Sequence record: KU521356.1
DNA length: 64,000 bases
Strand: one strand, 5' to 3'
Below the pieces are notes generated by a model. That model was not told where the DNA came from. It made no database searches and worked only from the letters and a program-made list of their open reading frames with translations. The position numbers and the translations under genes are program-made. This document shows positions 11,128 through 13,890 of this stretch, piece after piece. Each line of letters starts with the position of its first letter. Position 1 is the first letter of the stretch.

Positions 11128-11271
11128 ATGCAAGTACGAATTGAGGTAATCAATAGTGAGGGCAATCTGGATATCGAAGAACGGGTTGATATCCGCCCAA
11201 TGAAGGGGTTAACGGCCTGGATGGTCGCTCTAGCTATCAAAGGTCTTGTAGCTAGCTTTGCACGTAAGTAA
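11128..11271 (+). CDS. 47-aa hypothetical protein missed by the ORF track
   Basis: AGGAG RBS, MQVRIEVINSEGNLDIEERVDIRPMKGLTAWMVALAIKGLVASFARK, stop next to the terminator. Confidence 0.7.
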   Translation: MQVRIEVINSEGNLDIEERVDIRPMKGLTAWMVALAIKGLVASFARK

Positions 11272-11282
11272 GGCGACATAAA

Positions 11283-11304
11283 CCCCTCTCCATGTGGAGA
11301 GGGG
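11283..11304. terminator. Bidirectional terminator
   Basis: CCCCTCTCCA-TG-TGGAGAGGGG between convergent genes, T-rich on both strands. Confidence 0.8.
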
Positions 11305-11321
11305 TCTGTCTTTATTTTTTT

Positions 11322-11837
11322 TTATTTAGTTAACGGCTTGTTTAATTCATTTAACTGGTTATTGTTATTAACAGCTTCATTATGGGTAATATTTCTACAT
11401 AATTCAATTATGTATTCTACCTCAGAATAAGCTAATTCAAAGAATTCAGTTAATGACATATTAGATAAGCTACCTACTTTATACTTGAAGAAATCTCTAG
11501 TCAGTCTCCTTCTCAACCCACCTTCGATAAAGTCCTCTTTAGGATTTACCTTATTTAACCACATGGGTCCGTTTTCTGGTGAACCGATATCGTAATCAAG
11601 TAGATATGCTTCTCTTGTTAAACGTGCTGCTGTAGACGGTCTTACTGCCCCTACTGTCGATAATAGTCTATCTAAGTGTGTATCATCTTCAGTTAACTTA
11701 TCATAACCAAAGTTTGGATGTAGGATGTGACCACTATCTTCCTTGAAAGTGGCCTCAAGACGACTATATCTCAGATCATTAACTACACCATCCGGTTTGA
11801 CTTCGAGGCCGCCAAAGTAAAAAAAGTTGACAGCATG
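11322..11837 (-). CDS. Open frame with no canonical start for its first 91 codons; predicted -1 frameshift extension of the gp77-like protein
   Basis: Manual translation shows no stop from 11837 to 11322 and no ATG/GTG/TTG until 11564. It lies in the -1 frame relative to 11783..13384 and spans the T7 run. Confidence 0.7.
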   Translation of the reverse strand, partial: HAVNFFYFGGLEVKPDGVVNDLRYSRLEATFKEDSGHILHPNFGYDKLTEDDTHLDRLLSTVGAVRPSTAARLTREAYLLDYDIGSPENGPMWLNKVNPKEDFIEGGLRRRLTRDFFKYKVGSLSNMSLTEFFELAYSEVEYIIELCRNITHNEAVNNNNQLNELNKPLTK

Positions 11838-13384
11838 TCAATAGGGATTAAGTGTGGGAAACGTTCTTTAAATTTAGTAGCAGCAGGTGACTCACATACT
11901 GGACAATTCCAACTTGTAATTGCAATCATTCCAATTAGTTGTGAATCAATGAAGTTACTCACCGCATTAATAAAGCGGTCATTATATTCCGGTGTGGATA
12001 GAATATTAGTTAAGAACTTTTCAATAGTTTCACGATTAGTGGTTGCAGTACGAATATTGTCTTCAGAACTTTCACCATCGTCATCTTCACGTACTTTAAT
12101 TTCTTTAACAAAATGTGAGAACTGACGGGCAATAGAGATCTTTTGTAAACGTGCAATATACTGAGAACGTTGCGGACCATCGACTGGTTCATTAAAACTA
12201 CCTTGAGTCATATCGATAATTGAGTTAATCCAACTATCACCAGACTCTCGGCGATCAGCAATTGTACACATCTCAAGAACAACACCAACGTCACCAAACA
12301 TTTCAGTTACTTGAGTTTCAATACGGAATCCTTCTTTATAAGTCTTAAGATCAGATTCAGTACATGCATTAAACTTACGTGCAATATATTTCTTTTGTTC
12401 TTCTGAGAATGCCAGTAGATCATATTGAACAAGCGTTGACATATTAAGTTTCGCTGTTTCAATATGGTTACATGTATTGGCATCTGCAATGCATGGATAA
12501 CTATAATTAAATCCATCTGGATACATAGTCGCCGCTAGTGCGTGATGCAAGAACGGCTCATCAGCTACTGAGATAACATGCTCTAGATCAGTTGGGGTGT
12601 TGAACTTATAGTTGGATTGAATAACACATGCAAGTGCTAAACTACTAACCATGTTAAGTAACACAGCTGCCATGTTTGAGAACAGCATACCTTTTGATTC
12701 AGCGCCTAGCCGGATCTTTAATTGTGCTAGACGTGCTTGTAGGGCAGCTACTTCAGTACCAGTAGGTGCACGTAGTTTTACCCAAATACCTGAATGAGGT
12801 AGGAAAGTATCATATGGCGTACCGATGTTAGCTTTACGTGTTAGGAAAACTAGAGTTTCATCATCGGTCATTTTACGACCATTGGTATTAAATACAGGTC
12901 GGCCAGGTCGAATGATCTTTTCACCATAAGGAATTTCACTAGACCATTCAGAACCTTCTCGGGCAGTTGCACCGATTGGTGCATCTTCAACAATAGAGTG
13001 AGCTAAGCCTTCCAGAATAGCAGCTGTCCACTTTACACCGTCACTAGTGTCATCTACTTTATTATCAGCAAATGCTTTAAATAGTTCTTTATTGTGATCC
13101 AGGAAATTATAAACAGTCTGGGGATTCTCACGTAGTAAAGTAAGAATGCTAGCACTATCTTTAATAGCCGGTTCAGAAGCATCCCGGATATTTCCAGTTT
13201 TAGCATTACGTGGAATACGTAGTTTAATTTCTTTTTGATCAGGAACGAAAGGTGGAGTTTCCACCTCGTCATTATTTTCAATACTAGAGTCAGGATCGTG
13301 TTGCGCATTGATCTCATCAATTTGATCTAGTAAATTCTCTTCTGGAGTATCATCGTACTCATTATCGAAGTCAGCAGTAGCCAT
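11783..13384 (-). CDS. phiKZ gp77-like protein; possible tail/baseplate assembly chaperone
   Basis: 533 aa with acidic N-terminus, YPCIADANTC and a C-terminal CPVC motif. Function is inference. Confidence 0.6.
   Translation of the reverse strand: MATADFDNEYDDTPEENLLDQIDEINAQHDPDSSIENNDEVETPPFVPDQKEIKLRIPRNAKTGNIRDASEPAIKDSASILTLLRENPQTVYNFLDHNKELFKAFADNKVDDTSDGVKWTAAILEGLAHSIVEDAPIGATAREGSEWSSEIPYGEKIIRPGRPVFNTNGRKMTDDETLVFLTRKANIGTPYDTFLPHSGIWVKLRAPTGTEVAALQARLAQLKIRLGAESKGMLFSNMAAVLLNMVSSLALACVIQSNYKFNTPTDLEHVISVADEPFLHHALAATMYPDGFNYSYPCIADANTCNHIETAKLNMSTLVQYDLLAFSEEQKKYIARKFNACTESDLKTYKEGFRIETQVTEMFGDVGVVLEMCTIADRRESGDSWINSIIDMTQGSFNEPVDGPQRSQYIARLQKISIARQFSHFVKEIKVREDDDGESSEDNIRTATTNRETIEKFLTNILSTPEYNDRFINAVSNFIDSQLIGMIAITSWNCPVCESPAATKFKERFPHLIPIDMLSTFFTLAASKSNRMV
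11819..11825 (-). other. Candidate -1 ribosomal slippery site T_TTT_TTT
   Basis: Minus strand ACT TTT TTT ACT (T-F-F-T), 11 codons before the stop of the upstream gene. Confidence 0.65.
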
Positions 13385-13395
13385 TTAAAACTCCA

Positions 13396-13890
13396 TTATT
13401 GTTGAATTAGTTTTTCGTCCCAACCAGCTTCTCGAAGAGTGCCGATCATCGCTAGGATTACACCATCAATACCGCGTTCAATAGCACCTTCAATACCAGT
13501 GTATTTAGTAACAAGTTCACTGATGAGTTTTAGTTCATCTTCATTATTTGCTGGACCAGCCTTACCTTGATGTTGTGCATATAGGACACTGATAATTTTA
13601 GTTAGTCGATTAAGGTCAGCAATAACTGTTTGTAGGTTCTTTTGGAATCCAGTAGGATCAGATAACGTCGGAATGATTTCATTGATCTTATTGATAACTG
13701 GATTAATGAATACTTCAGTTTGTAGAATACGTTTACCTACGGAACCTGCTAGTACATTGACAACATCCCAACCATCACGGTTAAGAATATGATCAGCTGC
13801 GGCAGCTGATGCTCCAACTGCACGTTCAAATAGACGTAGAGTCTTTTCCTGTTCTTTAGTTAGAGTTGGTTCTTTAGCTTTATTTGACAT
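13396..13890 (-). CDS. Hypothetical protein (phiKZ gp78-like)
   Basis: 164-aa ORF, GGAG upstream, tightly spaced with the downstream gene. Confidence 0.75.
   Translation of the reverse strand: MSNKAKEPTLTKEQEKTLRLFERAVGASAAAADHILNRDGWDVVNVLAGSVGKRILQTEVFINPVINKINEIIPTLSDPTGFQKNLQTVIADLNRLTKIISVLYAQHQGKAGPANNEDELKLISELVTKYTGIEGAIERGIDGVILAMIGTLREAGWDEKLIQQ

Follow-up and report, generated by a model that had tools for sequence, protein, structure and literature searches.

A deeply conserved -1 frameshift site is predicted at the gp77 gene of phiKZ-like jumbo phages

The gp77 locus and its open -1 frame

Here we describe the gp77 locus in a stretch of 64,000 nucleotides (nt) from sequence record KU521356.1 (the window), where a run of thymines close to the gp77 gene's 3' end is the candidate site of a programmed -1 ribosomal frameshift. 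The window comes from a phiKZ-type phage, and the reading frames in question lie on its minus strand (Table 1). Over the 2.1 kb around the locus, identity is 100% with Pseudomonas phage KTN4 and 95% or more with 47 phiKZ-type genomes. The gp77 gene, whose 0-frame product has 533 residues, is PHIKZ077 or KTN4_103 (100% identical to KTN4_103), and the 80-residue open reading frame (ORF) annotated downstream is PHIKZ076.4 or KTN4_102.

An earlier note on this DNA had described the apparent gap before the 80-residue ORF as open frame that lacks a start codon for 91 codons, and on the minus strand this anatomy holds. The -1 frame stays open over 11837 to 11325 and stops at 11324..11322; its first ATG, GTG or TTG is the ATG at 11564, 91 codons in. 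Just as the note had said, this frame and the end of the gp77 gene overlap across the T run, over 55 nt that include T_TTT_TTT. The seven T's are the third base of codon 520 followed by the codons of Phe521 and Phe522, which places them in phase for a -1 slip; such a slip would join 522 residues of gp77 to 165 of the -1 frame, and the proposed product of 687 residues is right as arithmetic.

Table 1. Features of the gp77 locus in the window.
Feature	Position	Strand	Basis
gp77 gene (PHIKZ077 homologue), 0-frame product of 533 residues	11783..13384	-	ORF list and translation
Open -1 frame, 171 codons and stop	11322..11837	-	ORF list, relatives
Candidate shift site T_TTT_TTT, seven T's (U's in mRNA)	11819..11825	-	sequence
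0-frame tail after the site, 11 codons and stop, predicted dual-coding	11783..11818	-	translation
Linker of the predicted -1 product, -1-frame residues 7-44 of 171	11706..11819	-	model and alignment
Predicted helical domain at the C-terminus of the -1 product, about 125 residues	11328..11705	-	AlphaFold2 model
Annotated 80-residue ORF, PHIKZ076.4 / KTN4_102	11322..11564	-	phiKZ and KTN4 records
Two small stems, before (11841-11827) and after (11816-11796) the site	11796..11841	-	sequence
Terminator-like hairpin, directly past the -1 ORF stop	11282..11305	both
gp78-like gene	13396-13890	-

The two-frame layout is shared by distant relatives

Each frame was translated, aligned and searched separately. 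A tblastn search with the 171-residue -1 piece recovered 47 close genomes, the near-identical phiKZ-type records, in all of which both frames are intact, and 21 distant Pseudomonas jumbo phages at 34-41% identity, among them PhiPA3, 201phi2-1, Psa21, PA1C, Phabio and Noxifer. With one exception, the distant matches listed begin between query residues 1 and 6, which places their beginning at the T run and upstream of any start codon. In the 11 loci that were fetched, the conserved downstream sequence always lay in the -1 frame, the overlap with the gp77 gene measured 49-178 nt, and TTT_TTY stood in the same place.

Searching with gp77 itself revealed a wider group of 226 phage records, with hosts in Pseudomonas, Erwinia, Salmonella, Serratia, Ralstonia, Klebsiella, Vibrio and Aeromonas plus one Bacillus phage. 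Eight very distant members (Xoo-sp14, pEa_SNUABM_54, RSF1, SPLA10, Ea35-70, PCH45, Bacillus phage AgentSmith and SPN3US) share the -1-frame domain, the overlap and the site, with seven or eight T's, and across the 19 annotated phage genomes examined the downstream domain is in the -1 frame. A scan of IMG/VR added 71 further loci. In every one of the 70 whose gp77 gene end is readable, the downstream domain is again in the -1 frame, which is already open ahead of the T run and stays open through the gp77 stop, while the last 260 nt of the gp77 gene hold exactly one run of five or more T's. Over the annotated genomes and these loci together, the open frame continues 131-169 codons beyond the gp77 stop, with two exceptions, one locus cut by its contig end (L087) and one that closes early (RVTF4); the +1 frame was not comparably open in the loci compared.

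The comparison set used from here on comprises 82 loci with 73 distinct junctions, which form 14 groups under single-linkage clustering at 40% gp77 identity and reach down to about 23% gp77 identity. The search and alignment of homologues that the earlier note had proposed as a check bears it out, with an in-phase T run and an open -1 frame in all 73 distinct junctions. Its expectation that the count of T's would be conserved fared less evenly, as the in-phase run is always kept and a fixed length of seven is not, with runs of five to eight seen.

RVTF4 (L012, PQ015378.1) carries an extra frame change, such that its -1 frame closes 59 codons after the site and what is left of the extension domain runs on in a different frame. 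RVTF4 stands alone in this among the 82 loci, and the extra change may be either a sequencing error or decay.

A protein-coding -1 frame that has no conserved start

From the site onward, the -1-frame translations of the 73 sequences align over their full length. They share a GH[IV]...FG motif, in which His is conserved at 86% (position 32 of the phiKZ -1 frame) and Phe and Gly at 97% and 93% (positions 38-39), and further downstream Tyr73, Pro86 and Glu96 are conserved at 93-97%. Conserved alignment columns reach 86 residues further upstream than the protein that would begin at ATG 11564; the start-less stretch is conserved, as the earlier note's test required. Entropies at codon positions 1, 2 and 3 are 1.5, 1.2 and 1.8 in the start-less stretch and 1.53, 1.31 and 1.82 in the annotated part, that is, both show the same coding signature, with the second position lowest and the third highest. 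These patterns indicate that the downstream domain is under purifying selection.

Start codons, by comparison, are scattered. The first ATG, GTG or TTG after the site is found anywhere from codon 9 to codon 137 (median 35), at codon 30 or later in 46 of the 73 junctions, and beyond the FG motif in 44, and gene callers consequently begin the downstream protein at many places, giving products of 45-175 residues. The -1 ORF is thus open across the site and conserved as protein, with no conserved start of its own. Because ATG 11564 falls inside the conserved domain, the start of the 80-residue ORF has most likely been mis-called.

The annotations themselves vary accordingly, and none of 22 annotated records inspected joins the gp77 gene and the downstream ORF. 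Among near-identical genomes the downstream ORF has 80 residues in phiKZ and KTN4 and 45 in PA02, and in Pa_AttikonH10 no same-strand ORF is called there, two small opposite-strand ORFs being called. Called starts range widely in the distant relatives, and Ea35-70 uses CTG.

The spacing between site and FG motif takes 19 different values (62-131 nt), all of which are 2 mod 3, which means that the stretch, an intergenic spacer if the genes were separate, has seen many insertions and deletions and that the frame was always kept. In many loci the FG codon lies just 8-26 nt beyond the gp77 stop. The 0-frame tail after the site has 8-21 codons in 71 of the 73 junctions and 44 codons in two. Within the phiKZ clade (n = 29), 0-frame codons +1 to +3 (Thr-Leu-Ala) are conserved with synonymous variation, and -1-frame codon +5 is Pro in 28 of 29, with CCA, CCG and CCT all in use while the 0 frame there has Gln, Arg, Leu or Ser; Glu stands at -1-frame codon +6 in all 29. 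Judged by these substitution patterns, both frames appear to be read in the overlap.

In SPLA10 (L018) and PCH45 (L020) the FG motif stands 61 nt before the gp77 stop, inside the overlap; the 0 frame of these two phages runs 44 codons past the T run, and the dual-coding stretch spans about 135 nt.

These observations bear on the possibility that gp77 and the downstream protein are two separate genes, the second being translated from its own non-canonical start or by termination-reinitiation after gp77, with the T run kept because gp77 needs Phe-Phe. Two genes are indeed annotated in every record inspected, and a start codon lies near the gp77 stop in some relatives. The earlier note's own counter-sign, a normal start in relatives, is absent as a general pattern, with starts scattered over the 73 junctions, and present in those few. 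However, a gene with its own start should not have starts that are scattered and that in 44 of 73 junctions come after conserved motifs, nor does it account for synonymous -1-frame variation at 5-6 codons past the site, upstream of the gp77 stop. The frame kept by all 19 site-to-FG spacings, and an FG motif 61 nt before the gp77 stop in SPLA10 and PCH45, also speak against separate genes, and together with the nucleotide evidence given below they lead us to consider this explanation quite unlikely.

A further possibility is that the layout is an artefact or a remnant, in which a homopolymer error split a single gene for 687 residues or the downstream piece is decaying after a frameshift mutation long ago. 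Homopolymers are error-prone, and the RVTF4 record does have a further frame change in its extension, but the same layout recurs, with run lengths of 5-8, in independently obtained isolates and metagenomes, 82 loci in all. Moreover, no homologue examined is a single fused ORF, and the downstream domain shows purifying selection and is confidently folded in the model. Sequencing error and pseudogene were therefore rejected on the identical layout of the 82 loci; chance or sequencing error is untenable on this comparison, and we consider artefact or decay extremely improbable.

The T run is kept as nucleotides

The T run is in phase in 73 of 73 distinct junctions, as five T's in 7, six in 23, seven in 30 and eight in 13, and none is longer. 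The in-phase motifs are T_TTT_TTT (32), T_TTT_TTC (13), G_TTT_TTT (9), A_TTT_TTT (8) and G_TTT_TTC (4), with T_TTT_TTG (3), A_TTT_TTC (2), T_TTT_TTA (1) and C_GTT_TTT (1) being rarer. A perfect T_TTT_TTN heptamer is present in 49 of the 73, and the remaining sites are N_TTT_TTY or GTT_TTT, still U_UUY, such that every junction carries an in-phase slippery sequence of the form X_XXY_YYZ or at least X_XXY.

What is conserved goes beyond the amino acids. Of the 73 junctions, 72 use TTT as the first Phe codon and none uses TTC; the entropy of its third position is 0.00 bits, whereas third positions nearby have 1.2-1.95 bits. Outside the phiKZ clade, T is the last base of the codon before the Phe pair in at least 42 of 44 (third-position entropy 0.16), even as the residue encoded there may be V, T, L, I, A or G. 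Conservation at synonymous sites thus exceeds what the protein needs.

Base composition offers a second view of the same run. The window has 37.6% GC and holds 13 A/T runs of at least seven, so such runs are not rare there. In the gp77 homologues, by contrast, only one other run of six or more T's occurs in 104 kb from the 73 distinct loci, and the 23 loci with a GC content of at least 55% have no other run of five or more, yet all retain five to eight T's at the site, which is kept across 33% to 63% GC. On these alignments the T run is selected at the nucleotide level, beyond Phe-Phe.

Phe521 and Phe522 are invariant in gp77 and lie in a predicted helix, as one would expect were the run kept for protein reasons next to a separate downstream gene. 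A need for Phe-Phe nevertheless leaves unexplained the complete absence of TTC at the first Phe, and the T that ends the preceding codon under seven different amino acids.

No stimulatory RNA structure was found near the site

The earlier note had pointed to stems on either side of the site. Both are present, but they are neither stable nor conserved, as the phiKZ junction folds no better than shuffled sequences (z = -0.23) and RNAalifold found 0 shared pairs among 29 relatives. Over the 73 loci, the mean z-score of the minimum free energy relative to gene background was about 0 for windows of 40-60 nt downstream of the site and for a 40-nt window upstream. No obvious Shine-Dalgarno-like motif was seen upstream by eye in the printed junctions, where no dedicated search was made. 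Known phage -1 frameshift sites do not all require a stimulatory element, and the mechanism here seems to depend on the slippery run by itself. As no stimulatory structure was found, we infer that shifting is inefficient, and the data suggest a low shift efficiency.

The missing stimulator is also what one would see if the shift took place in transcription, with RNA polymerase of the phage or the host stuttering on the template A run and adding one U, which would yield the same 687-residue product. The frame, the open ORF and the T run fit such slippage equally well, the run is a homopolymer of 7-8 at 43 of 73 junctions, and the non-virion RNA polymerase of phiKZ is unusual. Bacterial polymerases usually need about nine or more A/T for transcriptional slippage, and runs of five or six are too short for appreciable stuttering by them, whereas 30 of the 73 junctions have just five or six T's. 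None of the runs (five to eight) attains that length, a threshold set by bacterial polymerases, from which those of phiKZ may differ. The T-ending preceding codon completes the heptamer but also lengthens the run, which leaves run length as the sole discriminator between the two. With run length as it is, we give transcriptional slippage only a slim chance, and we infer that the shift is ribosomal.

A programmed frameshift as the probable explanation

We consider it probable that this core gene of phiKZ-like (Chimalliviridae-type) jumbo phages contains a site of programmed -1 ribosomal frameshifting, which would give a 687-residue form of gp77. Most ribosomes would stay in the 0 frame and stop 11 codons past Phe-Phe, making the 533-residue gp77. 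A minority would slip by -1 with tRNA-Phe on the U run (U_UUU_UUU here, and at least U_UUY in every relative) and read the overlapping -1 frame to its stop, and in the long product gp77 residues 1-522 would then be followed by a flexible linker and by a helical domain some 125 residues long. The annotated PHIKZ076.4 (80 residues) would be only the tail of this -1 extension. The core proposal of the earlier note, a programmed -1 shift on the T run that extends the gp77-like protein, is thus strongly supported by comparison: as judged from the relatives, the recoding site appears real and deeply conserved, and the 687-residue product is predicted.

The way in which the frames are kept apart is informative as well. 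No single fused ORF was seen among 20 gp77 homologues (515-633 residues) or 38 extension representatives (45-175 residues), and a 0 frame that soon ends, together with the lack of a fused homologue, is the pattern expected if the short and the long product are both needed. A fixed ratio of short to long product would presumably be the point of the arrangement. A single transcription unit is supported by the lack of a terminator between the two ORFs and the presence of one directly after the -1 ORF.

Several points weigh against a programmed ribosomal frameshift. Imperfect heptamers make up 24 of the 73 sites, which offer just a U_UUY tetramer after UUU or GUU, and no stimulatory element was found either downstream or upstream. 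The lack of an in-frame fusion removes the simplest proof that the two parts form one chain, and the 687-residue product is a prediction from sequence. Lastly, 201phi2-1 has a TTG, and Psa21 and D6 an ATG, near the gp77 stop, where separate initiation may add to the output.

We found no description of a frameshift at the gp77 locus of phiKZ-like phages in the literature or in the records. The earlier note had offered the site as the jumbo-phage equivalent of tail chaperone frameshifting, apparently undescribed. Our searches on phiKZ-like phages agree on the second point, but as a claim about jumbo phages the equivalence is too broad, because a canonical frameshift pair of the G/GT type, gp181/gp182, is already described in the unrelated jumbo phage G (PMC8570332).

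If a programmed frameshift does operate here, every phiKZ-like genome mis-annotates a core locus, the 687-residue protein is absent from catalogues, and the downstream 'hypothetical proteins' of 45-175 residues are fragments with arbitrary starts. The site would then be among the most deeply conserved phage recoding signals outside tail chaperone genes, it would provide a handle on a gene pair that may act in baseplate hub assembly, and it would be a test case for frameshift predictors, as no RNA structure is detectable.

Comparison with known recoding systems

The gp77 site is a new instance of a known recoding type, and the nearest models differ from it in informative ways. Like lambda G/GT, gp77 has a predicted -1 shift close to the gene's 3' end that would give a minor, longer, C-terminally extended form sharing the N-terminal part, and in both no stimulatory RNA structure and no lineage with fused frames have been found. 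By sequence anatomy and conservation, then, the locus fits a 3'-end -1 frameshift of the G/GT type. In lambda, the shift is low-level and the 30:1 ratio of the products matters; the partner bound by the extension domain is a different one, and both products are missing from the virion (PMC5009743). Unlike G/GT, however, the gp77 gene does not lie between the tube and tape-measure genes, it is four to five times too large, with products of 533 and 687 residues where tail chaperones have roughly 100-300, and gp77 matches no tail assembly chaperone by profile or fold, a single such entry in the BFVD list having a non-significant E-value of 2.8. The equivalence to lambda G/GT or P2 E/E+E' that the earlier note had drawn therefore stands for the logic of expression, and not for gene position, size or profiles.

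A second parallel is dnaX, where tau and gamma, like the predicted gp77 products, come from one gene through a -1 slip on a homopolymeric heptamer. The dnaX shift is helped by an upstream Shine-Dalgarno-like element and a downstream hairpin. The dnaX ribosomal slip yields two products in a set ratio, and the shifted frame stops early, such that the frameshift product is the shorter one (PMC7412058), whereas the shifted product of gp77 would be the longer one, with no stimulator found.

T4 gp26 and gp51 provide a third comparison. Their families and that of gp77 each have four conserved Cys, but the order of the Cys pairs differs and gp77 is twice their size. From T4 gene 26, too, a second, nested product (26') is made besides 26, by internal initiation, unlike the frameshift predicted at gp77.

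Predicted folds, families and leads to function

Modelling with AlphaFold2 gave gp77 a predicted local distance difference test score (pLDDT) of 78 and a predicted TM-score of 0.81, and the protein is predicted to have a novel mixed alpha/beta fold. It belongs to PHROG 4585 (E 7e-196), a family with no assigned function, as is PHROG 12109, to which the extension belongs (E 9e-24). In the model of the extension, pLDDT is below 50 for residues 1-31, which predicts a disordered linker, and from about residue 51 it is about 81-98 per 10-residue block, with one block at 71. No Pfam, NCBIfam or PDB sequence hit and no PDB fold neighbour was found for gp77, and the extension likewise had no Pfam, NCBIfam, PDB sequence or PDB fold match. 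Chains of solved structures, including the phiKZ virion entries, gave no significant match to either piece, the only hit being phiKZ gp120 at E 0.83.

Four cysteines of gp77 (Cys298, Cys305, Cys494 and Cys497, as Cx6C ... CxxC) are present in 92% of 73 homologues, a pattern suggestive of a metal site that would link the middle of the protein with the C-terminal region directly ahead of the shift site.

A Foldseek search of the gp77 model against BFVD matched jumbo-phage homologues and, more weakly, T4-like hub entries named 'baseplate hub subunit', 'baseplate hub assembly protein, T4-like' and 'hub assembly chaperone'. Five members of the hub family in BFVD had E-values of 1.6e-4 to 3e-3 and TM-scores by target of 0.51-0.57, and two GenBank records label gp77 homologues 'putative baseplate hub assembly protein'. 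The SPN3US homologue (656 residues) covers all of PHROG 8054, while phiKZ gp77 aligns just from profile position 291, and the BFVD matches of 686-687 residues probably carry N-terminal extensions like that of the SPN3US homologue.

At the level of sequence the link to T4 is slight. T4 gp26 and gp51 match Pfam PF12322 (T4_baseplate) at E 9e-64 and 4e-52, and nine gp77 homologues gave no PF12322 hit up to E 10. An hhalign comparison of 73 gp77 with 93 gp51 homologues gave a weak 22% probability over 58 columns around the CxxC. The idea that the extension supplies the missing C-terminal half of a gp51-like protein was dropped, there being no match to gp51. The modelled likeness of gp77 to T4 gp26/gp51 is accordingly a weak lead at the level of fold, not a result.

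One could go further and take the gp77 pair as the phiKZ-like counterpart of frameshift-controlled tail or baseplate chaperones, that is, a distant relative of gp26/gp51 whose minor, frameshift-extended form recruits a structural partner at fixed stoichiometry through its C-terminal helical domain. We hold this only as a doubtful, tentative suggestion; if it were true, the rule of a conserved frameshift in tail assembly genes would reach an unexpected lineage and fold.

In T4 itself (NC_000866.4, 7803-9229), gp26 and gp51 both match PF12322, which makes them paralogues, and gene 26 is the one with the nested second product. The gp51 family has a second Pfam domain, PF28602, among precomputed hits.

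Neighbouring genes and the transcription unit

The gp77 gene is flanked by the gene of the helicase gp75, the small ORFs 076-076.3, gp78 and the gene of the head protein gp79, and the relatives examined show this same neighbourhood. The KTN4 record marks gp78 and gp79 as virion-associated and does not so mark gp77. Downstream, the GC-rich hairpin of 10 bp in Table 1 lies between the convergent -1 ORF and a small plus-strand ORF that ends at 11271, and no terminator-like site was found on the minus strand from the gp77 stop to this hairpin, which is likely the end of the gp78-gp77 transcription unit.

In every annotated relative a gp78-like gene of about 140-260 codons lies directly 5' of the gp77 homologue on the same strand, and in many it overlaps the homologue by a few bases. 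Its product is a putative virion-associated protein according to the KTN4 record, and gp78, gp77 and the -1 frame may be three reading frames of one functional module.

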